Positions 12,741 to 52,500 are shown, counted from the first letter of the stretch. The stretch: 64,000 nucleotides of DNA from Tubulanus polymorphus (GCF_964204645.1 NC_134030.1:18312210-18376209), one strand, 5' to 3'. The notes: generated from the letters alone by a model not told the origin. Made by a program: numbers and translations.

Positions 12741-13794
12741 TAAATGAGATTTGTAAATGAGATCGACGACGACGACGACGACGATCAAAATGACCAGACT
12801 CAGCAGATACGCTCGACAAAAAAGCCGACACAAAATAAGAAAGTCACATTATCAAGGAAGTGACAAGCTGAAAAAGATTGAAAAAGATTGAGAAATTCAA
12901 TCCTCTCCAAACCCTCACCCTGTCAATGCAAGAAAAACAAAAAGCAAGGGCCCTGAAACGCGAAGAAAGCTCTTTTGCAGTCTAATGTTATGGCCAATAT
13001 GTATCAACCACATTGTCAGATTTGGATCCAAAACTAAGTTTTCTAGCTCAAAATAGAATGAATGAAATACTTTGTCACGCTCAATGTGAAACTTTAATGG
13101 AAACACAAAATTACAGCCATTTTCCGCAAAATCAACAGCAGCCTTACATTCAACCGAACTAACACAACTGGACACAATCAGAAGATAACATTTCAACACT
13201 TCATCAAGTGTAATAAATTGTGAAGATATGATGTCATATTTCTTCAATCATTCAGTCATCGAGTCAGTACCAATAGTATTCAATTCATATTCTGTTTTTA
13301 TTGTCATATATCAATTCTATTTTTTTATCATTCAGTCATCGAGTCACACCAAATAGTATTCGATCCATATTGCTATTACATCAGGCCGCTTCTTTTAACG
13401 ACTCTCCAGGGATTTTAAATTCTATAACAGCATTCTTTCTCGAGTGTCGAAAAACAGAGTTTCAGCTGCCCGTAGTTTCTCTACCGACGTAAGGCTTATA
13501 TCAATGGAAACCTCTGCCCCTCGTATTCCTGCATCAAGGTACCGCCTATACCTGCGGTACCTTACAGCTAGGAATGAACTTAACATCGTCAACGCGAATT
13601 TTCCGTTTCGTTTACGTTTAAATTGGAAAATGGTTGGCGTTTGGAAAAGACATTAAACGCGTACCGGCCATTGTAACCATGTTGTATCGGCTTTAAAACG
13701 TTCCAATCGCGTGTACGATGCGTTTCAATTGGAACGATAAACGAAGTTCATTCTCTGCTGCCATATCGAAAATACATCCGAACAAATAATGAAA

Positions 13795-28756: not shown

Positions 28757-31700
28757 ATGACGAAGACAAGTTTGTTCTTAATAATCTGCACAGTTTTACT
28801 ATTGGGAAACTTATACATAGCACAAACATCTGGAGCTAATACGAATGAAATAAGTAAGTTACTGCGACCGTTACCACTCGTCCTAGTAATTATATTTCTG
28901 TCAGATTTGCAAATTCGGTCGATGACGTCAGATTCAGTGCAGTAGATGATAGATTTACTACAGGCCCTTTCACATTTTATTGACAACAGATCAGGGGCTA
29001 ATTCTATAGACTGGTATTAAATTTAACTCGGGGTTCAATTCCAATTCATTTTCAATTAAGTTAACCCAGGGGTTTAAGTTAATACCAGTCTATAAAGCCG
29101 GGCCCTGGGGCCAGTTGCACAGTCATGACTTAAGTCCAAAAGTGGTCTTAAATCTTAAGACTGGTCTTTAGTTGTTAGATTAGCTATAGAACGAAGTTGG
29201 TCTTAGACTGGTCTTAAGTCTAAGCCATGACTATGCAACTGGCCCCTGGAGATTTACAAAGTATTCGAGTCTGTCTGTCATACTTTATTTCACATGAAGT
29301 ATGTATATCTTGATGTCTGGTTGAATAAACACGAGTCTTCTAGCTCGAATCGATCACATTAATTGCTTTCCGGTTAATTACTTAATTAATTACCAGTGAC
29401 TTTTCGGAAATGAATCCGAAACGGTTAAAATTTGCAATACATACATATATATGTATTTTTTCAGTAATTCATTCGATGCCTGTCCCTGATCCTGATGGAG
29501 GACCCGACATTAAAAACGAAGAGGAGATGATTGAATATACTTGTATAACAACAAGTGTCGGAAATTCTTCTACTGTTATATTCCAACAGAAGAGAAGAGG
29601 TTCTGAACAATGGAAAACAATTCCAGACGAAAAGCTTAACAGAACTCAAGACCTAAAGAATATTAATTCCGTTAAGCTAGAATTCAAAGCTGATTTCACA
29701 CTGCACAATGGAACAACATTTAGATGTCTAATAAAGGAAAACCAAACAGATCCAGAACCTATTCAATTTGATCTAATCGTAGTTCATCGAACTGGTAAGT
29801 AACAGTTTGTGTAGCTTATTGAAATAGTAAAAGAATTTAGAACATTAACTTGCGTTCTCGATTTTCCTAAAAATATCATAGAGTCGAATTGCGCTGATAA
29901 AATGTCTAATGTCTGGTGTTTGTAGTTCATTTTCAATGAAAAATGTCTCAGATGAAGCACTGAACACACGTGAAGTGTGGACCACCATTTTTGAAAGTAT
30001 TCTGATAAAATGTCTAATGTCTGGTGTTTGTGGTTTATTTTCAATTAGAAATGTCTCAGGTAAACCATTGAACACATGTGAAGTGTGGACGATCAGTTTT
30101 TGAAAGTGTGCTGATAAAATGTCTAACATCTGGTGTTTGTAGTTCATTTTCAATTAATGTGTGAAGTTTTGAAGTTGTGATATGCATATCAGTAGGTTAT
30201 TTAAAAAAGGTAAACCAATTCAGATACATTTCTAATGCATTCTTGAATTTATAAAAATATCCTCAAATTGGCGACCCTACGATTCAATGTCAAATTAATA
30301 TCTCTGTTTAACGGATGATTATAGCCGGTTTAATTTGGTGTAGCTTCCTCCTTGATATGAGTATTTATTTATACATCTATCTATTCCATCTCGGTACAAA
30401 AAAATATCTTGTGTCAACTATTTTACAAAGATATCTTGTGTAAACAAATTGCCCTCTCAATTTCAAGGTCGTTGGTTTTTGATTCGGTATATTTGATACG
30501 CTGGTAACATGCCGGTCGATATAATGCTTCATTCATCACCAATCTCATCTTTTATTTATCTTTCTTCTATTTCTGTTGTTTATTCAAAATTATGCAATTT
30601 AAAAATTGGCTACTTTGCATGCATTCTCCATACGTTATTAGATAACCACCAATCAAGACGAAATGAAGTGGAATATCTAAATTCAATTTACGTAGCAAAA
30701 TGAGAAGATCTCGCGCAATGGCCGAGTAGTTTAAGCCGCCAGTTGCTGGTCTCGTTAATCCAGGGTTTGAACCCTCAAACCCTGGTGGCGACAGAGTTTC
30801 TTGGTCGAAGGTTCGTCTCTGGTCCCCTCTCCCCCAATTGGGAAAAAGAAACATCGAACCCGCTAATAATGCCCTGCGTGGCGCCTAGCGGGCTGTTGGT
30901 GTAAAAAAACTGTATTTCTTACTGGGTATGCAGGAAGTATTGCGATAATTTTCATTCATTGTCTCAATGTTTCATTCATTCATTCAATTCTCATCGACAG
31001 TTCTGTGCGTTACTTTTCATTTTTTGTTGTTGTTTATTTCATGGAAATAGTTTTTAACCCTCCGGTTCGCAGATCAGATATTTTGAATTTAGAATCAGGA
31101 AATTTCTTGACACATTTATCGAACAGGTGATGGAGTAATCCCGAAATCGATTTGTGTCTTGTTATGTCAATTTAGAAATCGCTACCGAAAATTTTACTGT
31201 AGTTTTTGTCGTATAAAAATGTTTTCCGCTTGAACCAGTCAACAACACAAATTTCTTTCTAGTTCCGTGATAATATCACATATTACACGGATAAATTCGT
31301 AGATATATTATATCTATGAATTTATCTCTGAATATTCCAAAATTTTGCACTATATCTACTATCGAAAGTCCATTTCAAGAATGTTTAGCTTCCTCATTGC
31401 CCCATTCATGAATCACAAATTCAGAGGTATAGATGATTTAATTTGTGGATGTAGACAATTGCGACATAATAAAACGTGGTGGTTAATATGTATTCAAAAA
31501 TGTCCGAAATGATTAAATAGATTCATTTTCGGAAAAAATTACGCTTGTGATGAATTTTTTTTTGTGTGAAATATTGCCGCTTTAATTTCGCTTTTAAGGG
31601 GTCGGGGCCCAGTTACAAAAAGATGTTTAACTCTTAAATCGATTTGATTTCTTCATCAATTCAGTTTATCTAAAACCGAGTTAGGCCGTTTTTGTTAAAC

Positions 31701-33937
31701 TGGAGTATAAGTGGATCTTCTTCAGTCTTTAACTTTCAGCTAAAACACAATTTTGCACGCGTCAGTAAAATCCAACCAAACAGTTATGCAAATAACATCA
31801 CGTGACTAGCGACAAGTCTACTAGTCACGTGATGCTGCGGCTTCTTAACATTGCGGATTTTCTAAATGGTGCGGCCTTTAACTTTCAGCTAGAACACAAT
31901 TTTGTGCGCGTCAGGTAAATCCAACCACAAACAGTGAAAGTTACGTTCTGTATGTAGTTTCCTTGTCTCATTTCAGATCGACGTTCAGGTTTGAATCAAA
32001 TCCCAACGACTGAAATCACTACATCAAGGTCAGTATCTTTTTCACTTAGCGCACTATCGAATCAATTCCATCAATACGAAACGATCTACGGGTTAAGGAA
32101 CAACGGCTGATACTAAACTAAACTATCACATGTAAATCATTTCTTTGTGATCGATGTGTTTTTTTTTTGGATTAAATATTACTTTGATTTTATATCTCGC
32201 TTGTCTCATTGGTTTCCGATTTAGAATACCGGACCCGTTTTCACAGTTCAGGGCTGGATTTGAGTAAAACATTAAAAACATTGATATTTAACTAAATCCA
32301 ACTCAGGATCGGGTCCTAGTTGGTGTAAAATGAGGAGGTCAATGAACAATAATAAAAACGCGATGTCATTTTCCACAATCTGCGGAAAAGGTAACAGCAA
32401 GGACAATCGCAAAATGCTTAACCTCGATGCAGCTACCACCAGCCCTGCCTTTTCATTTCTGTTCTGCTGATTTATTTTAATTGTAAATTGCATCATTTTT
32501 ATTCAGAGTTCGCCTGGTGACTGCTGTTGGCTCGAAAATTTACAAGGTCATTATGAAATTAAGTAATAATCGAAATTTCATGTGAAATGTAGACCCCGGA
32601 TCCCAGACACAGAGTCGAATTAAATCCACTTAACTGTGAACCTTGATTTGGGGTAAAACGAAATACACTCTATAATTATTCAAACCGAATGATTATTTGC
32701 AGCTTCTGTAGAATTTGTAGTATACGGTTTGATTCTATTCTGTTCTAGTTTATACCCGCGAATTGTATCCAGCATATTCTACATCCTTCGAGTTTTCGTT
32801 TTTTATATCTCAGACTGGCCACATCGATCAGACTGTCCTGGACGACAATGACCGGACCACATCTGACCGGACCACATCTGACTGGACCATGATGATAGTT
32901 TCCATCGCTTGTGGAATTCTCGGTTTCCTCCTCTTCATCGTTATTATCGTTGTCATCATCATCGTCATCGTCATTTTAAGGTATGTAGGCCTAGTGAATA
33001 AACACGGCAGATGATTTCAGCAGGGATTATAACTGATTGAGCCATCCTCGCTTGCCCTTTATTGGTCTATTACCTTCAACAGGTTCCCGTTCAGCGCCCA
33101 CCAGTCTATTTCACGTTCAATGTCAAAGTAGATTGTGGAGCTCGATCGCTGATGATAAGCGGTCGCCATTAGTTCAAAATCAAAACGGTGACGTCATATG
33201 TAAATTTCTATCGTCATAACAAAAACCACGTGTGCGTGTCTACTCCCTTTTCGGTTAAGACACGAAACATCATGATATTGTGGACCTTCCCGGCAAAATG
33301 GCTAGTCACCGAAAAACTACTAGTAGTAAAACTTCTTTTTTCCCGTCCGGGTTTATGCGGAGTTAAGAAGGGTTTCTGAAATGGGTTATTTCAACATATC
33401 TTTCTTCGAAATCAATTGATTTCATCAGCGCAAAATTATCCATTTTTCAGACGCAGGGTACTTTTTGGTGAAGGTCGTGTGGACACTACAACACCCCAGC
33501 GGCAAACCGAGATGGTTTATGAAGTATATGACGAGTTGTATGATGACATTGATTCTGTTACTGAGACTGACAAACTGCACACCAGCGATCAGAAAGTTAC
33601 TACAGATCCGTACGCGAATATCGAGGCAGGGAACGGCAAAGATACAGCTCGGTACATGGATATGACAGCCAGGAAGGGTAAAGACACAACTTCATATATA
33701 AATATGGAAGCCGGGAAGGGTAAAGATCCAACTCCTTACTTGGACATAGAAGACGGAGACACTGATACAACTCCTTACATGGATATGGAAGCCGGAAAGG
33801 GCAAAGATACACTAGCTCGTTGCATTGATATGGAAGCCGGGGAAGATACAGATCGGTATATGAATCTCCAAACGGAAGATACTGATGAACCTGTGAAACA
33901 TGATAATCAACTTTATTCTAATGCTACTGTTGAATAA
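28757..33937 (+). CDS. Gene A: single-Ig type-I membrane receptor with tandem tyrosine-motif tail (~380 aa)
   Basis: Exons 28757-28853 (signal peptide MTKTSLFLIICTVLLLG), 29465-29794 (Ig: YTC..W..FRC), 31977-32028, probable micro-exon 32507-32516 (needed for phase), 32814-32980 (TM MMIVSIACGILGFLLFIVIIVVIIIVIVIL), 33451-33937 (RRR stop-transfer, Tyr repeats). AATAAA overlaps the stop. Confidence 0.8.
28993..29245. mobile_element. Two abutting palindromic Harbinger-type MITEs
   Basis: 29108-29245 has TIR gggccagttgca/tgcaactggccc with CTG TSD; ~28993-29105 is a second foldback (tatagactggtattaa/ttaataccagtctata). Confidence 0.6.
29893..30152. repeat. ~109-bp tandem repeat (~2.4 copies) in a gene A intron
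   Basis: ctgataaaatgtctaa at 29893, 30002 and 30111. Confidence 0.85.
30711..30910 (+). mobile_element. tRNA-derived SINE-like element
   Basis: A-box-like TGGCCGAGTAGTT (~30718), B-box-like GGTTTGAACCC (~30764), A-rich end. Confidence 0.5.
33600..33870 (+). repeat. Coding ~42-bp (13-15 aa) tandem repeat x7, consensus D-T-x-x-Y-M-D-M-E-A-G-K-G-K
   Basis: YANI, YMDM, YINM, YLDI, YMDM, CIDM, YMNL in ORF 33416-33937. Confidence 0.9.
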
Positions 33938-34007
33938 ACTTGCGATAAAGTTCCGTTTGTGGGCACCACTGATCAAACAACTGCTGATACAAAACATACT
34001 AGGTTTT

Positions 34008-34229
34008 AGGCTAAACAAAAATGATACCTTGTTTCTCCGCAGCGGCTGGGTCATTTTTGTAAAATATGATAAAATTTGTAAACAGTTCACTTCTATAGCG
34101 GCCGGGTCTGTTATGGTAAAATTGATCACGATTTAAAAAAAAGTAATGTATAGGGTAGATAGGCGGCTGGCCGGGTCAACATTTAAGCTCAGCAGAGCGG
34201 AGAAACAAGGTATCAATTTTTTTTAGCCT
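34008..34229. mobile_element. MITE-like inverted repeat downstream of gene A
   Basis: aggctaaa..gataccttgtttctccgc / gcggagaaacaaggtatc..tttagcct; partial third copy at ~34400. Confidence 0.55.
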
Positions 34230-36599
34230 TATCATCATTATAATGGTTATGACGATTGCAAACCGAAGAACACTTAATCTACTGCAATAATAATTCATTC
34301 CACTTTTGGCAAATGTTGATCCACCAGGTGTCATTAGTGTGGAGTGCAGCAGATCCGTCCACGTCACTGTATCACGTTACTGACCCGTGCTGTCCTCATA
34401 AGGCCAAAAAGACCTTGTTTCTCATTTTCGGTCGGGTGCAATAATCTTAGACACCCGGTAAAATAAAAACTGAATGCTGGAAATTAATTCTCGGTTCATA
34501 GAAAATTAGATAAAAAAACGTTCGGTGGGTGTCGGAATGTCTTCTTGTCGTTGTTTTTTTAGGTTTGGGCTTACCAGTACTAGGAGCCACTAGTTACAAA
34601 GTTAAAATGTTATTTCGTCATAATTCGTTTGACAAAATATATTAAATATGGTGTTGTTGTGTGCAGGCACCCGAGATCTGTCTGCCTTGGTCCTTCGTGT
34701 CAATCAATCAATACATTCAAGAAAGTGTTGAAGAATGTAAAAGACATTTTGACAATGTTTTCATTCAGTGGGAGTAAATAATGTATAGTTATTTCTCTGG
34801 GTCTGGTGTGAGTGAACCCGCAAACCCCGTTAATAGTAACGGCTGGGTAGCTTTAGCTTTAAAAAACAAAGAAGGGTTGCTTCCAGATATTTTGACTGGA
34901 AATGCTGCCTGCCTGGTCAATATGATTGTGAAAATGAGAAACGTATCATTTTTTCGGCCTTATTCAATCTTTACGTGGGTCCCCATCACCAGAATAATTC
35001 GATAATATTTAGCAAATGTATATTTTGGTCGCATTTTAATCAAACTGTAATTTAGAAATACCAAAAGTTTATCTGCAGAAATTAACCTTTTGAATTGTGT
35101 CAACTTAAATGAGTAAGCACTAACTTGTAGGTTAACTAGTTTTTTGGTTTTTTTTGTAAGTATAACAATCGATGAAATCTCGTACTGATTATTTTGAGAT
35201 AAGGATTTAGAAATAGATGAAATAGGATTCTTAAATTTAGGATAGTTTGTAAATAGATTTGTATTTAGGTATGCTGGAAAAACGCCGTTAACATCACAGT
35301 CGGCACTAGATTATGAAAAGATCGTTAAATTTAATTAGTAAGCATGAATTCAAAAAGTCGTACATTCTTTTTTGTACGTAAGTACTCGTGAGCATTCGGT
35401 GATAATGTTTCGGTTTGGTAATGTTATGAGACAAGGATTACTTTTAGAATAGATAAGATAGAATTCTTAACTTAAGGATATTTTGTAGATAGATATAATC
35501 ATAACATAGTTTAGGTATACTTACGTAGTGCTGTCCTAGTGGGGGTATAGAGAGTATGGCGGTATATCGGTGGTGTTTTACTATGTATTTGTATAGAAAT
35601 GTACATTGGGAATACCTGTCGGTAGGCGGGGGTGGCGCTATATGGGAGGGTGGTATATTGGGGGTTGACTGTATTTTCAAAATAGAATAAACCAATAAGA
35701 TAATCTTATGTAATGTCCTAAATCATTTAGTTAAGGACACATCGTGGTAGATGTAAATATAAGCGACTTTTTTGGAGATCAGCATTTCATATTCGAGAGA
35801 CAAGTAAAAGAACAGCATATAACGATAATCTGTAACTTGTTGGCCTCATTTTGTGATTTAGGATTCCCAGATGAAAATATTTCATTATATGATTTTTATT
35901 AATCTCAAAAATTATTATCATTTTCATGTTTCGTATGTATTTATATTTAATCATTCATTTTATTTTGTATCTTCTTGTCGCAAACTGAAGATGTTTTTTA
36001 TTACTCAAGTGAGCATCGACTCAGTGTTTGTTCCTGTTTTTACAATAATTTGACATCTGTTTCTGTACAGTACTAGTAATGTCTTGCAGACATGTCATGA
36101 ACGTGTCTAGTTTATGAAAGATATACATTAATGTTCCAAGGTTTTCTAAGGAGTCAGAGTTAGATTTTCATCTTGTATGGATCCTTTCTGTAAATTGGAA
36201 TTCACATACCAATATTTGAAAAACACCAAGATTTTGTTCACCTTGATGAATTGGCTAGTTGAAATAAACTACGGTTCGTAGCGTAATCATCGGAGCTTTG
36301 TCGTCTAATTTATCGAGGACATGGAGCTGGAAGAAATCAAGCTAGTTCCCAACTGACAACCTACGGAAATTCAAAAATGGACTTCCCATAGAAGCCTAAC
36401 CCATTAGATTCCTGATAAGAAAATATAAAAGTGACGTCAGTTTGAGAAAAGTCGATAGACAATTGTGGTGTGTTGTGAAAGTAAAGTAAGGCAACACTCT
36501 GACTGAAATCCAACACAATGTGTCATCTAATCAGCAGTCTCTTTGTTTTCACACACAAAAAGTGATATACCGAGATCTCCGATTGGGCAGAGATGACGG

Positions 36600-36738
36600 C
36601 ATTGCGCCACACCACGTGATTTTTATTATTCATGACATCACAGTTGCGCAGGCGCACTCTGACGAAATATTGTTTCGGAAGAGTTGACGCCTGGCGCAGC
36701 TAACGACGTAGCGAGAGAAAGTGAAAGAAACCAACAAG
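36600..36738 (+). promoter_or_regulatory. Probable promoter and non-coding first exon of gene B
   Basis: CpG-richer patch with NRF1-like TGCGCAGGCGCA (~36644), CACGTG and CGGAAG; donor AAG|GTACT at 36738; acceptor before the ATG exon at ~37549. Confidence 0.35.
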
Positions 36739-37143
36739 GTACTTTTTGTTAACGAAAAATGGTAATAAAGCTGATAAATTTCTGTTGATTTTTGTAGGCC
36801 TACAATTAGGCGATATTCATCACCGATAGAAATCAGGCCTAAAAAGGTGCCCTGACGACGTGGCGTGTGCGTATCACCTTGAGAGTTGACCTTGTCCCGC
36901 CTTAAATAGAATGCCTTCTTAATATTTTTTGGTGTATTTAGTTGTTCAGTGTGTTAAAGGACGAAATTACTATTACTAAATCCTTGTTACACCTGAAGAG
37001 AGATCATAGGTCTATTTCACTCGTTCGTATTTTGATGCACAGAATCAGTAACCATGATACACTTTTATTAATGCACCCTTTTGGGTCGAGAACACTATGT
37101 ACAAAGAAGTACATGACGTATTTACATATGTTTCAAATTTTTC

Positions 37144-37277
37144 AATAATAACAATAATAATGCGTATTTAGAAATACCCTTGTTTCTCATCAGCTCTTTG
37201 TTTCTCATCAGCTCTTTTTTGAATAAGTGACAAGGGGCAGGATTTTAATTTTATCTCCCTTTTTACCTCCCTTAGTA
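37144..37277. repeat. Dispersed ~120-bp repeat, second copy at 40446-40557
   Basis: aataataatgcgtatttagaaata..gcaggattttaattttatctccctttttacctcccttagtag in both places. Confidence 0.75.
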
Positions 37278-37570
37278 GAAAGATTGCGCGAGTATTTGTT
37301 CAAAGAACACTAAATTGTGTATAGTTAAATCATATCTTAAATAAGGTTCGTTATATTAAGGTGACTAATATTGATTGGCGGATAATAGAAACTACTCTAC
37401 AAGAAAGAATGATATAACATATAAGATAACATGTATTTAGGGAATAGATTACGTAAAATGAAAACAACCGATAAAAACTGGTTGTTGAACTTTAGATAGT
37501 AATAAAGTATTTTCATATATTAATTCTGGGCCGTTTTCATTTACTCTAGTCTAAAGGTAACGCATTGAAG

Positions 37571-40500
37571 ATGAAGAACTGGATCTGGTTGGTAATCGAT
37601 GTAATTCTACTGCTGACAATCTCGTTCCATTCAGAAGCTGTATCGGTACGAAATAAGAGAAATACTGGTGAGTTAAAATGATGAACTACTTTTAAACTGC
37701 AGCGTCCGGTCCGTATATTGTGTATTTGATATTTCAGCACCTGATGGAGTTGTACTGGACAGTGTGAATGTATTACCGGGTAAAAGAATATTACGTATAT
37801 TGTGTATTTGATATTTCAGCACCTGATGGAGTTGTACTGGACAGTGTGAATGTATTACCGGGTACACGTGTATTACTGTCGAAGGAAGGTAAAACTGTTA
37901 GTATTACCTGTAAACAGAGCAGCTCTACAGCGACTGGTGTAGAATTCCAGCTACAAGTGAACAGTGGAGCAGGAGGCACCTGGACTCCAATACCTACAGC
38001 ATCATCAACAGTTTGGGTTTTTGAACTGGAGGCTGGAAAACAGTATAAATGTGTAGCCATTAATTCAGCAGGAACGAAAGAAAGTGAAATCTACAAATCA
38101 GATGTAATTAGTGAGTATTGGCGGAAACTCGATTGTTCTCGTAAATAAAATGGTCATGTGATAATCTATTTTTTTCTTCAAAATACAACTGAACCATCGC
38201 GCAAAGAAAAAATATAGAAATAAATTACTGGCTTCGGTGACAGTTACCACTATCCTTCAAATACATCCACTGCTTAAATTATTCCATGCGTATGATAATT
38301 CAAATGGCCCCTCACGCATGGGCAGTCCACACTGCTAGAGTTACAGCCTCTAGGCTTCTTGGGCTGTCCATCATAGACTATAATTATAATTTGGTTATTG
38401 TATTAGAGTGTTAAAATCTTGTAATGTACATACATAAATGCTTAGTTTCGTACTTGTATTTTATATAGTTCTATGAAAATAAATCAATAATTAGTTAAAA
38501 ATAACTTTGGATGCGAGTAGGCCTAACCTTCCGGTGCATTCAATTCAGCATTAATCGATTCAAACTGAAGGAAATAGGAAAACTTAAGATTTGTTTTATA
38601 TCATTCTCATTATAGGTATAAAGATAAATGAAAACCCGTGTAAACTGCATGAATTCCAATCGCTGGCTTGTACTTGTGAAGCCACTAGTAAGATCGGTAA
38701 TCCAAACATCAAAGTAAAATGGTACGCTGATGGATTTACTGAAGGATCAACAGAAATTGTAAAAATATATGATCAAGGCGTAAATACTCCGGTGAAAGAT
38801 GGAGTTATCAACAGGAATCAGATGCGGTTTAATCTAATGATGCATGCAACATTGATTCAATGTAAATTGAGTAGATACAATGGTTTAATACTACCGAGAC
38901 CACTTCAAAATCAAATATTTTATGAAACAAAAATGGACGTTACGTGTAAGTTAAAAAATATTATTTTTTTTATCGTTCGTCTTTCGTGTAGTTTGAGCAA
39001 TTTGTTGAAACCACAGTTAGAGATTTAGGAGTTACTTGGATAACACTTTTACAATGATTTCATATCCTTTCGTTTTGATATTTCATGTAAGAAACTCGCA
39101 ATGAGTATTTATGCATGTGTTTATTTGCTATGTCAAATCTAACCTTCTAGAAACAGATTATATCTATAGAGTTTGATGCAGGGACGGATTCATCCCCAAA
39201 ATACGGTATAAATCCCTTTCAGCGCGTCTACACCGCAATGCAGTGTATAAATCGGTGATGGATTTTGCTAGTACACCGCACTGTGGTGTATTGATGTCAT
39301 TAGTAATTAGTAATTATCTCTTGAATATGGCAGCACCTGACAAATATAGTGAAATATCAGTAACTAACGATACATCGCGCTACTGTGTAGACGCACTATG
39401 TGGTATTCCCGTTATTCAACACACTAGGGTGGAATTTTTCAAAATGTTCAAAATATCTCCAGCACTATAGGGGATTAATTAGTCAGCACTGAAAGGGAAG
39501 GGCAAAACTAATCAGAAAACATAAACTCACTTATGGAAATAAAGAAAATAAGCTTATGAATTTTTAAACTTTTCAAGGTATCTGTTTAATTTTTGGTTTA
39601 CCTATGCTGTCACTTTTGAGCGGGTGCGTCCGCGTTTTGGTGGTACTTTTGTTTATGCCAGTAGTGGTGCCGATTTGTATGAGCAAAAACGGTTCATGAC
39701 ATGAGCGCCTAGCAGCATGCAAAGAACCGGATTCGTAGCTTTCGATTCCTCAAAGATTTCTGCCGAAAACGATATTTTTGACGGCAGATTTTTCAGATCC
39801 TCGGTTTTATGGCATAAACATCCGATGACCTACATCTATGACGTTTTGACGTAGATTCCTCATTTACGGGGTTCCCTATGCATCGCAACAACCAATCAGA
39901 TCTACGCGCACCTGCTACGGAGTCCCGTCGATACTCTATTTAGTAACACATTTTCTTTGCCAAACTTGTATTCTAAATCTATATTGTATGAATAGAAATA
40001 TCAATTTGAAAACATCTTGCTTTCTAAAATTGATATTTGGTGCACCAGGGCTTATTTTGGTGACTAAAACGTGCGTATGAATATGCCGATGAATTTTACG
40101 CAATACTTATTTGCATATAGAAAACACCGACAGGGGAACTAGTATTGTTTAGGATATATATAAACGTCATTGTGTGTGTTAAACCACTGCTAGTCCTCAG
40201 CGATCCCGTCGATGAACACGCATCTTGGTGGATATAAAAGAGCGATTTGCTTACATATCATCATGACGGTTTCCTCACCGCATCGTCACGGCTGCGGTAC
40301 GACCAACTCGGTTTTAGCTTACTGGCGGGTTTCACGGTGAAGAGTAACGGCGGCTCTGCCGTGGTTTCGTGACTCTGTTCATCTATTTGACTGGGACTGA
40401 ATTTACTCGTAGGGGCACACGACTCAATCGCCCGGTTTGCCCGCATAACAATAATAATGCGTATTTAGAAATATCCTCGTTTCTCATCAGCTCATTTTTG

Positions 40501-43500
40501 GAAAAGTGACAAGTGGCAGGATTTTAATTTTATCTCCCTTTTTACCTCCCTTAGTAGCAAGATCGGGCGAAAAAATACGCTCGTGTGCCGTTGGCTTTTT
40601 CGTTTTCTGATATACGTTCAATTATGTCGAGCATTTCATAAGGCTGTGGTAAACCTCTTGGCCCGTGGGCATTTATTTTCATTTTCCCGTAAAATTTCAG
40701 GGCAACTTGACTTTTTCAGGGGCGTGCGTCCCCTTGGATCCGCGCCTGTATTACCTACTGGAACACCTAGGTTCATATTGAGGCAACTTAAAATTTTCAG
40801 GGGCGTTCAAACGGCCCCTGCACCTACCCTTGGATCCGCCCTTGTACCTATTGGAACACCTTTCATATGGTTTTATATTGAGACGAATAAGCAAAGTGTT
40901 CCATGAACGAATATTTGTTGATATGAGGTTAAAACTTTTTCAGTAAAATTGTGAAAAAAACAAAAATAAAACATATCAATGATAAATTAAACATAATCTA
41001 TAATAATTAATAATCAATAATAAAAAATGATATCCATTAAATACATGTACACCTTTCTTTTTTCAGATTTTCCTGATGAAATTCAAACACGAGGTACTTT
41101 CACTGGACAGCCTGACATTAGAACTGAAGGAGAAGTTGTAGAATATATTTGTAGAACAGAAGGTGGGAGGCCCGATCCTACAGTGATATACCAACAAAAG
41201 AGAATAGGTTCTGAACAATGGCAGCCAATTCCTGATCCACAACCTCGTAAAGTACTTCTCAGAGGGAACTTAAAAGGCTTTGACACGACGTACAAGTTCA
41301 AAGCTAATTTCAAACTGCACAATGGAACGTCATTTCGATGTGCTGTAAAGGAGAACCTTACGTTTCCAGAACCTCGACAATTTAATCCAATCATTGTTCA
41401 TTGTAAGTAACAGTTTAATTTGTCGAATTTGAGAAATCTCTCTGAAAATATCTTCTTTAGAAGTTTGCATTGGGTTTAAGCAGTTTTCCTTGCAATGGGT
41501 ACAAACCACTCACTCTAATAGACCTATCCACCCTGAACATGTCACGATAACATCAGGTTTGACTCCCTGTGAGGGAGGAACGTGGCAGAGTCTCAAGATG
41601 TCATCAGGTTCGAATCCCTGCCGAGGGAGAAACGTGGCAGAGTCTCGCGATAACATCAGGTCCGACTCCCTGCAGAGGATGATGGTTCTACTATAACAAG
41701 GGTTCAGACTCTGCTAGGTCGGATATTTGTAACAATTTTCACTTTTTTGTTTTTTCAATCAGATTTTGCTGCACCAGTTTACAAGAAATCCAGTGAAAAT
41801 GAAACAAATGCAGCGTATATTGTAACAGTTAATAGTAACCCATTGACTCAACAAGTTACCTGTGACCCTCCAGCTGTCGTTCAAAAACTATCAAACTCTC
41901 AGTGGAATATAACGATACCTATCGTAAATAGTACCACAACTGACTATAGAGGGCAGTGTTTGGCTGATGGTATCAATGAAAGGGTCATTAATGTCGCTGG
42001 TTATCATCACGCCGGTCCAACTGATGAACCAGGTAAGATTCCGGGCCACAACTGGATGGATTTGATCTGAATCTGAACATTCAAATGATTTACTCAGATC
42101 ACTAGAAAATCTTCTGTGTCTGTACTTTTCAAAATCACTCGCCTTGAATTGGGCTTTGAACCTATATCGAGGTTGACGGCAGTTGTATGAAATCATCTAT
42201 TGTGATTACCAAATTGCTGATTCATTTAAATCGATTGTGCTTAGTTCCAGATGAATGGAATGGAGGAATAGTGTTTGGTGCTGTAATCGGTATACTGATA
42301 TTACTGACTCTGATAATACTGTTTATACTGTGTCTTTGTGGCTGCTGTAAGTTTTACCTAAAACCATCATTTAATCTAAAAAACAGTACAGACAAACTGC
42401 AGAATCAGAATATTGTATTATTTCTAATTGACAGTGCGGTGCAGAAAACCTAATGATCAAATGTGTAGATGTGGAAATTGTAAGTTTTGTAAAAATTCAT
42501 ATACGTTATGCTTAAGATTGCAAAATGGTTTACAAGGCTGGAGGGATTCGAGGGTCTATTCAAAAGTATTCACTTTCCATTTGTAAATATGTACGGTAGT
42601 GATGAAAGAGTACTTGAAATTGAATTCAAGGTTGGGTTGAGTATTAACAAACGTTTGTGTATGTACATTTTATGAACTGCACATCATCAAAACAAAACGT
42701 ATCATTAAGTTACAGTAAAATAAGACGATTATATTATATTTTGTTTTCCAGTTAACTGTGTTTGTATAGAAAACCTTATGATAAATATTGTTTAGTTGGA
42801 ATTGCTGCATCGAGGGCAATGAACTATGTGTTTATTATTGCTAAATTTCCATAGAAAAAGACCATCAGATCAAAATGAAATACCATATCAATCTGTTCTT
42901 TTGTTGTCGTTTGTTTTCAGTCCCTTCTTTCCGCAAAAAGCCTGTTGCTAATGATACAGTGGATCCTGCACAAGGTAAGGAAGATAACTACTTTAGTAAC
43001 AGTATTTTCCTTATGAATACGAAATTATTAGATTGGTATATGATACTTGACTGTCTTTGACACTGTAGCATGCTTTTATGATAATCTAGTTGCGCATTTG
43101 TTTTGCTAAATCCTTCCACACTTCTAGCGGAAATTTGCCCGCAAAAAAACTTTGCTAAACCCGCACTCATATGAACTGTGTTCCTGTGGCTTCAAGAACA
43201 TTTTCCCTAAACAGAACTCACAACTTTCTATACCTTCTTTCAAACTGATGAAGATTATCAGTCAGGTACAATGAAGTGCTGTATTATTTTTCATTTGCAG
43301 TGCCGTTAAGACCAGTTGCGAATGAACCAGGTGGATCTACTGATGATAATGAGGATGCCTCCTCAGATGAACTGTGTCACTGTTTTTGCTGTGAGTTCTA
43401 TATATAAGCTGATAAAGATTAATATTCAGTAACTGTAGAATAAAATTTTGTATAATTTTCTATTTGCAGTGCTGTTTAGAAGTGAGCCGTGTTCATGTAA

Positions 43501-43505
43501 TTGCT
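37571..43505 (+). CDS. Gene B 5' part: signal peptide, 4 Ig-like domains, TM, Cys-rich cytoplasmic micro-exons (no stop codon)
   Basis: Exons 37571-37667 (MKNWIWLVIDVILLLTISFHSEA, RNKR), 37820-38110, 38616-38945, 41067-41402, 41763-42032, 42251-42346 (TM GIVFGAVIGILILLTLIILFILCLCGC), 42435-42479, 42921-42974, 43215-43265, 43301-43390, 43470-43505. All GT-AG, all phase 1, all internal lengths multiples of 3, frame open throughout. Confidence 0.85.
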
Positions 43506-46500
43506 GTAAGTTGTATTCATTTTGAAACTTTAAACATCAATAATCCTACAAAATCAAATGTATTGTCGTCAAACCTGTGTCAAAAAGTGTTGATATAGGG
43601 CGAAGGAATCTCAGCATGTCCTTATCTTCTAATCGCCATGATCAGTAGTACACTTCAAATTCATTTTCACAAAGCTATTCAAAAGTTACCCAGCTGCCAA
43701 AGTCTTATCATGCATTTTACGCCCCTACAACGCGTTGTCACTCTCGTCTGTCCGCCCGTCTGTCCGTGCGTCGGTCCGTCTGTCCGCTGTGGTTTCCGTG
43801 CCCTAGCACCTAAACCCATTATTTCAAACCCAGATATTCTTGACCCCTTTTGCGCATAATCTCAAACTCAAGCGGGTACAGATCAGTCGTCAGGTAAGAT
43901 ATTCAAAAGATTTTAACGCAGGCTTAAACTGCAAATAACCCTCTTTAACCTCTGTGAAAATAGGAAATATAGCTTGAAGAGATACTTAATATTAAGATAA
44001 TAAATATTGCGATTTCTTTTACGCACGGTTTAGATATGCGGTCCTTGGTTTCACATCGTCACTGTTCTCAATTGTTGAGTTCAAAAATTCCAAGAATCGC
44101 CAGCAAATATCTGCATTTCATTTCCTTTAAAATGGTGTATAAATTGATTTCGTCGAGCACGGGACTGCAGAACTATATGATATTCAATCTAAACTTATGT
44201 TTTAAAAATGAGCGCAAATTATCGCAACAATAGGGACCTCGAGGGACCGCCACAAAATGGCGCCTAGAAACTGGAAACTTCTTTATTCAACAATTGCGTT
44301 GTACTATATGGAACCCTGATGCCCCGGCGCACGTTTTCGATGGGGGCATACTGTATTCACTTTCGTCTTTCCGTCTGTCCGCAGTGGTTTCCATGCCCTA
44401 GATGTACTATAGATGAGGTTAGTAACTGATAAGATTTTGGGTCATGTAAGGCCAAGGTCAAGGTCATAGGAAGCCATTTTGTAAATTTCATTGCCGGGCT
44501 CTAACTCAGTAAACAGTTTAAGATAACTGAGTGAATTCTGTAGATGGGTTATCCGTGAGGATGACTTATTAGATTCCAGTCAGTCAATGGTCAAGGTCAC
44601 TGGTAGCTGTTTTGTATTTTTCATTTTCTGCCTTCATAAACGGGTCGATATACATTCGGGGTGTATTTTACACACAGACATTTCACCTAATCTTATCACA
44701 GAGCGGTCGCACCAGTCTTCAGAAATATTCTAGTTATTCCAGAGATATTATAGTTCATAGCCGAGGACGTCCCTTTGATAAACGCGTATATGTGGATTCT
44801 AGAAAGTGTCTTCTTAACCGATTCTGACTTACTGACAAAGTCAGAAAAAAATGACGTCAGAGTACGTCCGGTTTGAAGTTCATGGGGAAATCGGAAGTAG
44901 AATTACGTCACGCTAAAATCCGGCAGCAAAGTAACTAAAATCCGGCAACTTTTGGATCTGGAAATTTAGTCCAAGATTGGGTCTTTGAATAGTTTAACAA
45001 TGAACCGCGTCGATCGAACGAGTTCAAAATAGCTGAAATTCCCTTAGCAACGGAAGCGAATTCATGATAAACAAACCACGCGCCGGGGCCCGGTTCAGCC
45101 ATCGCAGGCTCGAATCCCGGAGAATTACGCTCTCGCGCGCGCGTGCGACAGTCAACCCCAGCCGCAGCGCTGAAATATGTAATCATTTATCAAATATAAT
45201 GACCCTAAAACTGCGATGAGTCGCGTTGCCGTACGATTTGCTTAAAATTTCACGGCAGCTCGGCGGCTCGCGGATGGATCGGCACGCCACGGTCTCGCTC
45301 CGAGGAGCAGCGACATCGCGGTCGGCAAAAACATTAGTCTCCGCCCCTTCTTTCACCAAATAAAGAATTCGGTACCGCTGGCCACGTGCACTATTAATAT
45401 TGAGCCGTAGATTCTCGGTACTCGACATTCCCCGAGAATTAGAAACAAATAAATATTTTTCGCGAGAGAAATCAATTTTTGTATTTGACATTTCAATTTT
45501 ACTGCTTCTAATTTTCGATTTTTTTTCTGGCAGAAAAAAATTATGCGATTGATGCGTTTCAACGTGTCTTTCATTTTTTTCTCGTCTTCATTTACTTTTC
45601 GAATGGAGCTAATTTCTAAATTAACACCAGGTCAAATTCTTCACTATTGCAAACCGTCTCAGTTTCACCATAATGTCGGTTTTTACATTTCGGGTTTTAC
45701 AAAGTGGTTTAAACCATTAAAAAATTCCTGATACAATCTAAATCGAAATAGTAATCTTTTTAGCAGTTTCTTCAATAATTTAATGCTCGGGGCCCAAATC
45801 TACAGAACAATTTCAATATCGAAATAAAATTCATAGTCTTCAAGAGTTTCTTTCCAGTTTCATTGACAAAAATCAATTATCTCGGTGTTCGTTTAGTCAG
45901 TGACATTATTTTGAGTGTTTTTGTTACACTCCATACGTGAACGAGGTTGTTTTCGAATCGTTATGATTTCTTAATCTTAGTATGAAAAATTAAATCAAGC
46001 TGCGGTGACGAAGCGTCCGTCACTTAGATTTCATCTATTACATATTAAGCGCACAGCGAGCGCCGAAGGCGCGAGCTGGAAGCTCCTTAAGTTAATCGCG
46101 CGTATGAGGCAAATTCAAATTTTCAATATTTGAGCTCAGACCACTATTCCAAAATCTTCTATATCCTATAGTAAAAACAAGAAATTCGAGAGTTTAGTTC
46201 ATATATAAGCGCGTAAATTCAGGGGAAATCCTGCTTATCGCTCATAGGCCAGCATCTTAGCTACGCTAAGTGGTTTTCGCCCCACATGCCCAACCTAACT
46301 TTTGAAATAATCAAACCTTTAGAAAAGAGGGGTATCCCAGAACAGGTATGCCAGTACATCCGAGCTAAATATCTAAGGGAATCCCCCACCGTGTTTGGTA
46401 CCCTTACTCCAAGCAAAAAAAGTCCAGGGAATCCCTTATTTCATCATCAATCCAGGGGCGGATCTAGGGGGATGGGTAGACAGTATTGGAAGGAAATTTA

Positions 46501-49500
46501 AGGGCACCTTTCTGATCTTAGGGCACACCCAGTATCCAGGTCAATGCGAGCGCCGAAGGTGCGAAGTCCTTAGAGGGCGGTCTGGGGGCCCACCCCCAGA
46601 AAATTTTGAAAATATGGTACCATTTAAAGGCTTTTAGAGGGCTTCTAGAGGCTAGCAGAGCAATCCAGAATTAACGAATAACGAGACAAGATTTCAACAC
46701 ATGCGGATAAAAAATGAAGCTGGCGAACCCATGAAAGAATGGTTGTCGTCAACTTCGCCTAGTGCCCCTATAATCTTTAAAAGTGCCCCTTAACAATTAT
46801 ACAGAATACGGCTAAGTGTCCCTTCATTGTTAACAATCGGCAAAAATTGCCTCGTCTTCACATTTATCCTTATGTCGTGTGCCATCTGCCAAACCAAAAG
46901 TGCCCCTAAAATTTTAAAAATTAGGCAAAAAAGTGCCCTTTTCTTCAACATTTTCCGCGTATAGTGCCCTCTTCTAAAGTACGAGTGCCCCTTTAGCCCT
47001 CCCTGAAAAGGCAAGGAAGGACAAGGTGCCCTCATCTAAAGCATGAGTGCCCCTTGCAAAAGGAAAGTGCCCTTTTTAATTTATCATGATTAAAGGCTTT
47101 ACAAATATGATTATCTCTCCTCACTTTCTCGGCAGCAGTATATACTAACCGATTAATTTTATAATTATGCCCGGATTACGGACACGGAATTAGCGGAACT
47201 TGCTGAAATAATGCCGTCAAAAATATTGCCGGTGAAATTTCGAAGGGCACTTAAAAATTCTAGACCGTATTGGGCAATACGGCTAATACGGTCTGGATCC
47301 GCACCTGCAATCTGTCTCTCAGGATCAATGGATTTCATACATATAACCGAATTTCGTTACCTATCCCATTTGCAGAAATTATGGCAACATTTATGGGGGA
47401 CCTCTTCTTCACTCTAGGTACTATTTTTGGGGTCCGGCCCTACGCATCTTCGAGCTACTAACCTAATTGTGGTCTGATGCCATTTCTCCATACCGTCCTT
47501 CTCAAAAAGGGTAAGCGATTTTTTCTACCGGCCACAGTTAGGTTTCGCTCTGCGCATGTTCTGAATATACCGGAAGTTAACAAACCGTGACGTACGCGGA
47601 AGTAAAGTTCAGCACATGTAAGTCGCAATTGAAATTAATTCTTTTTCTCTCTTTCTTCTACATGAAATACGTGTGCCACAAATGATGTTTTTTTCATGTC
47701 AAATGTATTTTGGACAAAAAGGAAGATCCAATACTCAGAACAGTAGTTGCCAAATCTGGTAGTCATCTCTTGACCGATGAGGGATTGCGGTCCTTAAAAT
47801 TAAATTCCTAAACATGGCCCTAGCCCTTGAAGCTGAAAAAAGTATGTATGACTGTACGGTTATTGATTCTTATATAATAACCCCGATTGTCGCAGGAAAC
47901 AAATCACGATACAAATATAGTCTATTCAAGAAAGTATGTAGTACTTTGATAACTTTTCTCGTTTTTCATTTACTCTTGAGACTCCTCATAAAATCTATTT
48001 GATTACTAGATAAATTTTGAAAACAAATATATTATGATCATTGGCGGCTACAACAAGGATAGTAATCATTGGGTTCTGGTTGTAAGTAGAATTATAATTA
48101 TTTGATAATTTCGGTATTTATTTGTCAAATATTAAGTATTTAGAAATAATGCATTTTTTTATTCATATTAGATGATCAAGCCCAAAAACTATGAAATCGT
48201 CTACCTTGATCCGTTTGGAGCATCTGATTTTAAAAAAGCTCAAGCACTGAAGAATATTAAGTAAGAAATCATTATGAAAACTGCGTTATTCTCTATCGAT
48301 GTCAATGTATTATGTATAATTTCCAAACTATTTCTCATCTCAATGTAAGGTCTTACTTGACTTACTGAGCCACAGCCCTTGGTAGACATGACATTGATGA
48401 TATTGAATGGTCCATAATCGAACCGCCTCACCAGAAACAACTTGATGGGCATAGTTGTGGCGTGCTGACTATTTTGGTAGGATTGATTTGTTTAATTTCA
48501 ATATTATTGATTATTGTTTAACAAATTTCATTCAATTACATATGTGTATTCAACAGCATGCTGGCAGTGTTCTTCAAGGTACTGACACGACCCATATTTC
48601 AACAGTAAATGCAAATTCACATCGTTGGACATCAGCCGCTGCACTAGTTAATGAATCAGGTAGGCCCTCGACCTTATAGTTATTAAATTCAAAGTTCATT
48701 ATAATGCAATCCTTTTTAATTTTAGTGCCAGTATTAATGAACATTAATCAATATCAATATACAGTTCTGTTATTTCTTTTCTAGGAGGAATGCAACTATT
48801 GCTATCAATGGTACCATGTGGTGTGTCTACCTCATACTTTAAACCGAAAGATAATTCTAAATTTTGATTGGAAATGTATTTTCTGCAAGCAGTACTGTAC
48901 TAAGTAAAGAAATAAACACTTAAATTCATGATAAGAAATAAACACATTAAATTCATTATATATGCTGAATTCCATTTTATTTTTTGTCTTAATATTTACA
49001 TCCTGTCATAGAAGGAAACGGATCGGAAATCTTTTCGGATTTTAACCTTAAAATTTCGATTTTATCATCGCAGAATAACGTATACCTATTGACACTGTAA
49101 TTGATTTGACTAGCCATGTGCTTTACTTCCGCGTACGTCACGGTTTGTTTACTTCCGGTATATTCAGAACATGCGCAGTGCGAAACCTAACTGTGGCCGG
49201 TAGAAAAAATCGCTTACCCTCAAAAAGTGTAGTTTACATCCGGGACACATGGGCATTGGCTAAATCGCGGCGACGAAAATGACGGTCAGGGACGGACTTT
49301 CGTCGAAACTAGCGGGCCGCGTCACGCGGTTAGTTTGTTACGCGAATGAAGGATAACAAAATGATTTTGTGTAATTTCAGAATATTTACAAAGAATGTAC
49401 ACAATATATTGTCAAAAAATGTTATTTTTAGTTCGTATTCCTCCGTAGAAACCGATTGGAAGACTGGATTCGAATCCCACAAAAAGCACAGTCCCTTAGC

Positions 49501-52500
49501 AACGGGTCGAATTTTTTAGAATAACAAGCGCGCCGGTTTCACAGCATCACTAAGGGTCGAGTCCCGGAGAATAACGCGCGCGCGGTCCGCGTGTTACAAA
49601 ATGACCGTCCCGCTCCACACAAGTACTGAATAATTAACTCAAAATTTTGCCAATCCCTGGGAGTAAAATGCCGTTCGTTTTTTAACATATCGTATCTTTT
49701 TTTTACTCTCGTTTTTCAAACGTTATTCACCTTTTCCGCTTCGAGTAAAATACGTATACGCTATAATCCGTATTTAAAATACCGTTGTTCCATTAATTCC
49801 GAACCCATGCAACCCGTTGTAATACTTAGGAACAAATCTTTAGTGTAAAACATATAAAACTATTGAAGCCATAAGATTTAATGTAGAAATCTGACGTTTT
49901 TTAACTACAGAAAAATTTATTCTCGTGTAATCGATAAAAACAATAGGCTCTCAATATGTAATCAACATTCCCAAACTCCCACGTTGTTTTTCGCAGAAAA
50001 TGATTTCTTTTTGATTTAATCACGGGTCCCTTAATTCGCTCGAAGGTTTATCATATTTTGGGTGATTTTCTTTGGTCACGCCACCGGGTGCCTTCCTTCA
50101 GCAAAACCTACATTTTTGCAATGTAGAACTTGGGAACAAATTTCTTGTGTAAAACATAATATGTCAAAGTCGAAACTTGGTGAAGCGCAAAGCCAGTCTT
50201 AAGTTTTAATGAATAAATAGAGGCGAGTGCCCTTTCGGCAACTTATATAGAATTCTACATTGTAAAAAAACATAGGTTTCGCAGGGGCACCTGTGTTCGA
50301 TGTGGTCCGTGGCCAAAGAAAATCACCCAAAATGTCGAAGATCCATTTGAGCGAAGATTCGCCGTGATCAAATACATGTATAGAAAAGGAATTCATTTTT
50401 TGCGAAAAAACATGCTTTGGGAGTGTTGATTACAAATTGAAAGCCTTGTTTGTTTTATCTTTCATACGACAATAAATCCTTCTGTTTCGTCAGATATGTT
50501 CTTCGAACGGCTTTAACAGTTTTATATGTTTTACACAATAAATTTGTTCCCGCAAGTTCTACATTGGTTTTGCTGAAGAAAGGCACCCGGTGGCGTGACC
50601 AAAGAAAGTCACCCAAAATACGATAGACCTTCGAGTGAATAAAGGGACCCGTGATTAAATTTTTTTTTTAAATCACCCAACATATGATAGACCTTCGAGC
50701 GAATGAAGGGACCCGCGATTAAATTTAAGAAAAAATCATTTTCTGCGAAAAACAACGTGGGTTGGGAATGTTGATTTCATATTGAGAGCCATTGTTTTAT
50801 CGATTACACGAAAATAAATAGTTTTATATGTTTTACACTAAAGATTTGTTCCTAAGTATTACAACGGGTTGCATGGGTACTTAATTAATGGAACAACGGT
50901 ATTTTAAATACGGATTTTTACTCGAAACGGAAAAGGGGAATATCGTTTGAAAAACGGGAGTAGAAGACACATAAAGATAAGATATGTTAAAAAACGCGGC
51001 ATTTTACTCCTAGGGATTGGCAAAATTGTGAGTTAATTATTCAGTACTTGTGTGGAGCGGGACGGTCATTTTGTAACACGCAGACCGCGCGCGCGCCTTA
51101 TTCTCCGGGACTCGACCCTTAGTGATGCTGTGAAACCGGCGCTCTTGTTATTCTAAAAAAATTCGACCCGTTGCTAAGGGACTGTGCTTTTCGTGGGATT
51201 CGAATCCAGTCTTCCAATCGGTTTCTACGGAGAAATACGAACTAAAAATAACATTTTTTGACAATATTTTGTGAATATTCTTTGTAAATATTCTGAAAAT
51301 TACACAAAATCATTTTGTTATCCTTCATTCACGTATTAAAACTACCCGCGCGACGCGGCCCGCAAGTTTCGACGAAAGTCCTTCCGTGACCGTCATTTTC
51401 GTCGCCGCGATTTAGCCAATGCCCATGTGTCCCGGATGTAAACTACACTTTTTGAGAAGGACGGTATGGAGAAATATTGAAAATTTGAATTTGCCTCATA
51501 CGTGCGATTAACTTAAGGAGCTTCCAGCTCGCGCCTTCGGCGCTCGCTGTGCGCTTATAAAGGCGAGCCAGTGCCTCTTCAGTCATAGAATTCTACATTG
51601 TAAAAAAAAACATAGGTTTTGTTGAAGAAGTCACCTGTGAGTGTGACTGTGTTCGGCGTGGCCCGTGGCCAAAGAAAATCGCCCAAAATATCGAAGATCC
51701 GCTATGAGCGATGGTTCGCCGTGATCAATAGAAAAGAATTTCATTTTTGCGAAAAAAATATACTTTGGGAATCTTGATTACAAATTGAAACTGAAAGCCT
51801 GTTTTTGTTATCGTTCATGCGTGAATAAATCGTTCTGTGTCGTCAGTACGTTCTACATTAAATCTTCACGGCTTCAATAGTTTGTTTTGCACAAGAAATT
51901 TGTTCCCAAGTTCTGCATTGTAAAAAACGTAGGTTGGAAGGTACCCGGTGTTTGGCGTGACAAAGAAGATAACACAAAATATCATAGATCTTTGAGCGAA
52001 TTAATGGACCCGTGATCAAATTTCAAAAAATGAAAATCATTTTCTGCGAGAAACAACGTGGGAGTTTGGGAATGTTGATTACATATTGAGAGCCTATTGT
52101 TTTTATTGATTACACGAGGATAAATTTTTCTGTAGTTAAAAACCGTCAGATTTCTACCTAAATCTCGATCATGGCTTCAATAGTTTTATATGTTTTACAC
52201 TAAAGATGTCTTCCTAAGTATTACAACGGGTTGCATGGGTACGGAATTAATGGAACAACGGTATTTAAAATACCGGATTAGCGTTATACGAGTTTTACTC
52301 GACACAGAAAAGGGGAATAACGTTTGAAAAACGGGAGTAAAAGACACAAAAAGATAGGATATGTTAAAAAACGCACGGCATTGGCAAAATTTTGAGTTGA
52401 TTATTCAGTACTTGTGTGTAGCGGGGCGTTCTTTTTGTAACACGCGGACCGCGCGCGTTATTCTCCGGGACTCGAACCTTAGTGATGCTGTGAAACCGGC

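Follow-up and report, generated by a model that had tools for sequence, protein, structure and literature searches.

NLRs, the nucleotide-binding leucine-rich-repeat (LRR) receptors, are textbook cytosolic sensors. The sole studies of an NLR that stands at the cell surface and bears immunoglobulin (Ig)-like domains come from one laboratory and concern sea cucumber: AjNLRC4 of Apostichopus japonicus is a membrane pattern-recognition receptor that binds bacteria through its Ig part and that drives actin-dependent phagocytosis (PMC8699970), and a second sea-cucumber family member combining Ig, transmembrane (TM) and NACHT parts has also been described (PMC13133943). Here, we report on a window of 64,000 nucleotides from the nemertean Tubulanus polymorphus (C6:18312210-18376209, where contig C6 is NC_134030.1 of the 268-Mb assembly GCF_964204645.1), in which two neighbouring genes, A and B, share one Ig-like exon and the RefSeq model of gene B is of the Ig-TM-NACHT design. 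Strong protein matches of the window were all RefSeq proteins of Tubulanus polymorphus, and a literature search found no paper on nemertean NLRs of the Ig-TM-NACHT kind. In our reading, which we consider probable, A and B stand side by side in an expanded, modular cluster of Ig superfamily (IgSF) receptors and are not a private pair. Gene B is one of five NACHT-bearing copies and, as modelled, adds a new form to a design already described in echinoderms.

Like AjNLRC4, gene B as modelled carries extracellular Ig-like domains, a TM helix and a cytoplasmic NACHT domain on one protein, and the layout of the two is similar (Ig near residues 250-350, TM near 450-500, NACHT from near 600-700). Unlike gene B, the sea-cucumber protein belongs to another phylum, is without LRRs and has a second predicted TM helix, whereas the nemertean design is multi-copy (5 loci) and has kept an LRR-like C-terminus; AjNLRC4 alone has a tested function, gene B being known from its sequence. 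In a word-based search with NACHT, echinoderm matches were absent and the best matches from outside Tubulanus were about 25% identical. Since no echinoderm sequence was among these matches, an origin of the Ig-TM-NACHT design independent of the echinoderm genes is likely.

The interval 28757-43505 extends from the start codon of gene A to the donor of exon 10 of gene B, and both genes lie on the plus strand. Gene A (LOC141906643; XP_074652020.1, P0077, 390 residues) encodes a signal peptide followed by a single Ig-like domain, a TM segment and a ten-tyrosine tail, and its protein was threaded exactly onto six GT-AG exons of the window. Gene B, taken as isoform X2 of LOC141906642 (XP_074652018.1, P0001, 1486 residues), has in RefSeq three Ig-like domains (Ig1 to Ig3), a fourth domain (d4), a TM helix and then NACHT, and threads onto twelve GT-AG exons, all 11 introns being phase 1. 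Exons were chained only for checking the fit of the RefSeq proteins to the DNA; searches used single exons or RefSeq proteins.

An earlier reading of this DNA, made from the sequence alone (the sequence-only reading), had proposed that the only Ig exon of gene A is paralogous to the Ig3 exon of gene B. This paralogy was borne out at the protein level (52% identity over 100 residues, tblastn E 2.7e-23) as well as in DNA (71% identity, E 4e-24), and the gene A exon matched only Ig3 of gene B, not Ig1 or Ig2 (tblastn). The proposed bounds were exact when the RefSeq proteins were threaded: exon 2 of gene A occupies 29465-29794 (330 nt, the sole Ig-like domain, A-type) and exon 4 of gene B occupies 41067-41402 (336 nt, Ig3, the B-type form of the shared domain), each flanked by GT-AG introns in phase 1-1. 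The motifs listed in that reading correspond to the invariant columns of a 12-copy alignment; among these columns are C27 and C90, which are spaced by 63 residues, W50 and the F-R-C motif. It had also noticed the donor flank GTAAGTAACAGTTT, which indeed lies 3' of both Ig exons and nowhere else in the window; the flank recurs in the majority of 35 copies, A-type and B-type alike, and is thus not private to A and B. Private intron homology or gene conversion between the two genes was considered and rejected, because the introns resemble each other over their first 14 nt alone, a stretch common to the family. Both signal-peptide exons (28757-28853 in gene A, which includes the start codon and ends in phase 1, and 37571-37667 in gene B isoform X2) contribute 97 coding nt as noted before, which for gene B is contingent on the choice of start codon, isoform X1 starting at an in-frame ATG 24 nt upstream of that of isoform X2.

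An Ig fold of the shared exon is probable. In single-domain Pfam searches the gene B exon reached 18.2 bits for C2-set_2 against a cut-off of 21 and the gene A exon gave no Ig match; the whole paralogue P0021 passed for C2-set_2 (30.8), I-set (38.1) and Ig_2 (36.6). The shared exon has the Ig hallmark of two Cys within the 55-75 residue spacing together with the hydrophobic-x-Cys motif of the F strand. An AlphaFold (AF2) model of the domain showed 7 strands, weakly predicted (pLDDT 61). In a structural search (VIA), 50 of the 50 best matches were Ig domains (best Z 8.3, root-mean-square deviation 2.9 over 95 residues); the top Foldseek matches were BTLA, VNAR and I-set domains (TM-score about 0.57, E above 0.001). 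Taken together, the model and these matches speak for an Ig-type beta-sandwich at moderate confidence. Matches of the domain profile outside the family, weak ones, landed on Ig_3 and I-set proteins.

The shared exon is present in at least 55 intact copies on three contigs (C6, C9 and C19), the copy lists from the genome search being lower bounds. With the gene B exon as query, 22 copies on its own contig were found at 88-94% nucleotide identity, and the gene A exon of the window ranked only 26th, at 71%. With the gene A exon as query, one copy at 98% was found 116 kb upstream and about 23 at 76-79% on C6, C9 and C19, all of which ranked ahead of the B-type copies at 71-72%. A maximum-likelihood tree of the 55 intact copies was divided into a B-type clade (24 rows) and an A-type clade (31 rows), each with 100/100 support. 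The nearest relative of the gene A domain is the copy 116 kb upstream (95% amino acid identity), which belongs to a truncated gene (P0023, 163 residues), and the nearest relatives of the gene B domain are at C6:22765942 (4.4 Mb away, 93%) and C6:22277305 (3.9 Mb away, minus strand). The B domain of the window is 52% identical to its A neighbour and other B-type copies are 50-55% identical to A, hence there is no excess similarity between the two. The duplication that separated the A-type from the B-type exon is placed by this tree before the expansion of the family.

These results bear on the sequence-only reading, which held that exon duplication or shuffling had produced a tandem pair of genes, and which named as the finding that would speak against it a large dispersed family without close kinship of A and B. 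The domain alignment and the tree gave exactly such a family. A local duplication yielding a matched A/B pair is not supported, in view of the two deep clades, the closer relatives elsewhere (95% and 93%) and the missing excess similarity; what stands of the proposed origin is that phase-1 introns throughout fit exon shuffling. More generally, an exon common to two neighbours does not show a matched pair before all members of the family have been tallied. Beyond the genome, a domain profile was run against 1.84 billion proteins and gave only 17 cluster representatives with E below 1e-10; of the 8 whose names were consulted, 7 are from Tubulanus and one (P0035) is a metagenome protein. Within the proteins searched, we could find the family only in Tubulanus.

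The tandem arrangement itself proved real in another sense: A-then-B is a repeat unit of the cluster. Of the 24 B-type copies, 16 are preceded at 8-12 kb, in the same orientation, by an A-type Ig exon and its tyrosine tail. Among the 16 are ten A/B units of a tandem array with a period of roughly 37 kb at 21.75-22.09 Mb of C6, and a second pair of an A-type gene and a B-type gene with NACHT on contig C9 (294753 to 306060), where the order A, then B, then NACHT is kept. Thus the tandem pair postulated earlier exists as a recurrent, same-orientation two-gene unit, and its privacy does not. One unit was clearly copied whole, as its two partners near 18.38-18.39 Mb, shortly beyond the window end, group with the minus-strand partners near 22.29 Mb (100/98 and 100/94). 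An inverted segmental duplication was seen between about 18.38-18.47 Mb (plus, beginning shortly after the window end) and about 22.23-22.30 Mb (minus) of C6; it carries A-type and B-type genes, with pairwise matches between its blocks for the tail exons and for the Ig exons of either type. The arrangement is not obligatory, because the closest NACHT-bearing paralogue of gene B (minus strand, ~22.277 Mb, NACHT exon ~22.260 Mb) is preceded by a B-like and not an A-type gene, because the next Ig-NACHT locus, 58-71 kb beyond the window end, is without an A-type partner, and because at least 13 A-type genes have no B-type neighbour (at C9 4.2-5.07 Mb, on C19, and the truncated copy 116 kb before gene A).

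The two genes were also said to have different intracellular outputs, a tyrosine-based one for A and NACHT for B. For gene A, a tail with tyrosine motifs is indeed present. Its cytoplasmic tail is encoded by exon 6 (33451-33937, stop codon at its end) and contains, over 10 tyrosines and a 14-residue repeat, YMDM twice and YINM, YMNL, YLDI, YANI, YSNA, YDEL, YDDI and YEVY. YxxM is the consensus for the SH2 domains of p85 and YxN that for the SH2 domain of Grb2. The YMDM, YINM and YMNL of the repeat unit resemble CD28 YMNM, DAP10 YINM and the YMXM arrays of IRS-1, with no homology past the short motif. Canonical spacing of an immunoreceptor tyrosine-based activation motif (ITAM) was not found in the tail, and no Pfam family matched it. 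The tail has 62 matches elsewhere in the genome, and its 14-residue repeat occurs in longer arrays in the paralogues P0029 and P0033.

The output of gene B is NACHT in the RefSeq model, where the joint between ectodomain and NACHT rests on gene models and sequence logic. Exon 12 (56413-59093, ending with the stop codon) encodes NACHT, helical domains and the LRR-like C-terminus in a single exon; NACHT (PF05729) scored 54.9 bits (cut-off 26.7) and has Walker A GEPGMGKTT and Walker B LLDGFDE, and the LRR-like end scored 17.4 bits for LRR_14 (cut-off 40). In the genome, 18 intact NACHT exons of this type were counted, and only 5 follow B-type ectodomain exons, four on C6 (near 18.35, 18.44, 22.26 and 22.31 Mb) and one on C9 (near 0.32 Mb). 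Other B-type proteins end differently, some in a short Cys-rich tail (P0027, P0030) and others in a long helical module (P0026, P0024). This all-helical module of about 300 residues (P0004:1-315, P0026:667-1380, P0024:691-1130) is 60-72% identical between the B-type tails and the N-terminus of the NACHT paralogue P0004; neither Pfam nor the Atlas gave a match for it, and its AF2 model, with a pLDDT of 44, was too weak for a fold to be assigned. The NACHT exon starts at a constant point whatever precedes it, be it short repeat peptides, the helical module or Ig-TM, and this constancy together with the uniform phase-1 introns points to exon shuffling among few modules. Stand-alone NACHT paralogues (P0005, P0012, P0013) have N-termini of repeated short cassettes, MAESNPGINAEN...(I/V)Q(I/M)G..., none of which occurs in the window. 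Given the multi-copy design, the relatives with other tails and the lack of a sequence link to the echinoderm genes, the ribbon-worm case suggests simple exon shuffling as a route by which membrane-anchored NLRs can arise. The cluster also amounts to a natural experiment, in which one ectodomain scaffold is placed on different signalling outputs.

Taking A and B as members of such a cluster, the shared exon is the signature Ig-like domain of the family, split into A-type and B-type lineages before the expansion, and the family appears to have been built by shuffling of phase-1 exons. A-type genes combine one or two Ig domains with a TM helix and with YMDM/YxN motifs that are repeated along the tail, and B-type genes Ig1-Ig2-Ig3-d4 and a TM helix with a short Cys-rich, a helical or a single-exon NACHT-LRR-like tail, the tandemly amplified unit being an A-type gene followed by a B-type gene. 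Exon structure, paralogy, copy number, genomic order and domain content are what the sequence shows, whereas membrane topology, ligand binding, signalling and any cooperation of A with B are inferred. B would be a type I membrane protein whose variable distal Ig domains bind ligand; its clustering would bring the cytoplasmic NACHT modules together, by analogy with sea-cucumber AjNLRC4. A may be phosphorylated on its YxxM/YxN tyrosines and then dock SH2 proteins of the PI3K-p85 or Grb2 type.

It had been suggested that A and B may see related ligands, an idea that is weakened by where variation lies in the B-type ectodomain. Among five annotated B-type proteins the mean pairwise identity was 67% for Ig2 (exon 3, 38616-38945, the most variable domain among paralogues), 78% for Ig1 (exon 2, 37820-38110, which matches Pfam Ig_2 below cut-off), 85% for Ig3 and 93% for d4 (exon 5, 41763-42032, two Cys, no Pfam match, the most conserved). 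From these identities, the shared domain in B appears as a conserved membrane-proximal scaffold, and the variable distal Ig1 and Ig2 (and d4) have no counterpart in A.

The likeness to paired immune receptors that had been drawn is limited in the same way. Vertebrate paired receptors (KIR, PIR/LILR, SIRP, CD200R) resemble A and B in being clustered IgSF genes with related ectodomain parts and differing outputs, but the classical pairs have near-identical ectodomains and set a partner with an immunoreceptor tyrosine-based inhibitory motif (ITIM) against a partner whose charged TM helix recruits an ITAM or YxxM adaptor. A and B have one shared domain at 52%, B has three further domains, neither TM helix (exon 5 of gene A, 32814-32980; exon 6 of gene B, 42245-42346) carries a charged residue, and canonical ITAM spacing was not found in the gene A tail, so that they do not form a classical pair. 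Because both helices are uncharged, the usual receptor-adaptor pairing signal is absent. The comparison with plant sensor/helper NLR pairs failed as well: those are likewise adjacent immune-type genes, but both partners are NLRs and usually stand head to head, whereas A and B are in tandem and gene A carries no NACHT.

Several findings weigh against our interpretation. The A-then-B unit recurs in divergent A subclades, which could reflect selection for linkage and would favour a functional pair; the others concern the junction between the gene B ectodomain and NACHT. Read-through past the donor of exon 9 or exon 10 leads to a stop after 5-6 codons, making a short isoform possible, and AATAAA is present at 43999, downstream of exon 10. 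Read evidence, which covered 5,901 letters, came from Logan contigs only, of unrecorded kind, run X1 being DNA-like and run X2 RNA-like (no depth in unique intron bins, coverage of the NACHT exon and the 3' untranslated region); in these contigs no exon 10-11 or 11-12 joint was found, and exon 11 had no coverage at all in run X2. Chimeras are suspected among the RefSeq models of these clusters, for instance P0028 (LOC141911244, C9:4400818, L058), in which a ubiquitin C-terminal hydrolase is joined to a single A-type Ig exon at the C-terminus and which is probably a read-through chimera. Adjacency holds also for the separate genes A and B, and thus adjacency alone is no proof of fusion.

With the short-tailed paralogues P0027 and P0030, and with in-frame Met codons in exon 11 and in exon 12, these points would fit a gene-model artefact, in which B is a short-tailed protein that ends soon after exon 9/10 and NACHT is a separate gene, chained to it by RefSeq through the shared phase 1. 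We hold this to be doubtful, because the fusion is encoded by both RefSeq isoforms of gene B and by two annotated paralogues (P0003, P0021), because the order and orientation of ectodomain and NACHT are conserved at five loci on two contigs, and because exon 11 (55492-55620, linker) has a strong pyrimidine tract and CAG acceptor. Moreover, intron 10 (43506-55491, 12 kb) contains no recognisable stand-alone N-terminal exon or cassette of the kind used by stand-alone NACHT paralogues, and the contigs are short and break at sequence common to the paralogues, so the missing joint weighs little. That the gene B ectodomain and NACHT are fused in one gene is therefore what the models and the conserved order favour with reasonable confidence, the TM helix being followed by a Cys-rich juxtamembrane linker (exons 7-10: 42435-42479, 42921-42974, 43301-43390, 43470-43505). 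Intron 10 is enlarged by high-copy repeats. These lie at 54485-55075, and another stretch follows at 55667-55863, the contig depth of run X1 over both being about 1,000-2,000 times that of unique sequence. At one paralogous Ig-NACHT locus, which lies shortly past the window end, the distance from the last mapped linker exon to the NACHT exon is about 4 kb.

The recurrence of the unit could alternatively mean that A and B form a functional co-receptor unit, in which A as a YxxM scaffold supplies tyrosine signalling to the downstream sensor B, through a heteromer or through co-regulation. Such a unit would account for the same-orientation A-type gene directly upstream of 16/24 B-type copies, for partners drawn from several deep A subclades, for the second A-type and B-NACHT pair on C9, and for the many short-tailed B-type proteins (P0027, P0030), which might need a signalling partner. 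We nevertheless judge it unlikely: the TM helices are without the charged residue used in known receptor-adaptor pairs, the B-like predecessor near 22.277 Mb, the partnerless Ig-NACHT locus past the window end and the at least 13 A-type genes standing alone are not expected of it, the A and B of the window resemble each other no more than the two types do in general, and unit-wise segmental duplication suffices for the pattern. A more elaborate version, which we regard as a decidedly long shot, would make A-then-B a conserved module of a YxxM-repeat co-receptor and a multi-Ig sensor with a swappable output, be it NACHT-LRR, the helical domain or a short tail; the helical module would then be a homotypic adaptor linking surface receptors to NLRs, and gene B a fused, short-circuited version.

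Tubulanus is a solitary worm for which we know of no fusion or rejection biology, and no NACHT fusions are known to us in the Alr family of Hydractinia. Judged by analogy an allorecognition role for the A/B cluster is unlikely, and a polymorphic system of self/non-self recognition, of the kind formed by Hydractinia Alr or by the receptors of Botryllus, is very improbable, since NACHT and PI3K-type motifs suit pathogen sensing or phagocytosis at least equally, even though the cluster is lineage-specific and has variable distal domains and tyrosine-motif tails, comparable clusters have been described (PMC9546547, PMC12582321), and Alr likewise comprises large lineage-specific sets of atypical IgSF genes with poorly scored domains and cytoplasmic tyrosine motifs (PMC9546547).

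As for the remaining parts of gene A, the stalk is encoded by two small exons (exon 3, 31977-32028; exon 4, 32507-32546) and the beginning of exon 5. A four-exon model of gene A with an acceptor at 32773 was found to be wrong, the RefSeq model of six exons with the two stalk exons being the one that threads exactly. In exon 5, a 15-bp coding repeat (32849-32889, 2.7 copies) builds the DRTTSDRTTSD of the stalk just before the TM helix. Intron 2 of gene A contains a 108-bp tandem repeat at 29893-30157 (2.4 copies, 87% matches).

Tandem repeats were also seen in gene B. A perfect 82-bp tandem duplication at 37712-37864 (plus strand, 1.9 copies) comprises the splice acceptor of the Ig1 exon together with its first 42 nt, and the same repeat has 6-8 copies in paralogues (C6:21760054-21760523, L018; C9:303256-303971, L030). 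Each extra unit contains AG, 42 nt and GTAAAA, and could serve as an in-frame phase-1 mini-exon for a 14-residue repeat. In the intron between the Ig3 and d4 exons, 41542-41678 holds a 52-bp tandem repeat (2.7 copies) whose GGTTCGACTCC box resembles a tRNA T-arm, which suggests a tRNA-derived short interspersed nuclear element; at the L018 paralogue, the intron between the Ig3 and d4 exons contains a repeat-built open reading frame. Finally, transposon remnants flank the two genes at 1180-1692, 12493-12831 and 63006-63800, all on the minus strand: a DUF7869 transposase-like open reading frame, a DDE_Tnp_4 fragment and a reverse-transcriptase fragment.

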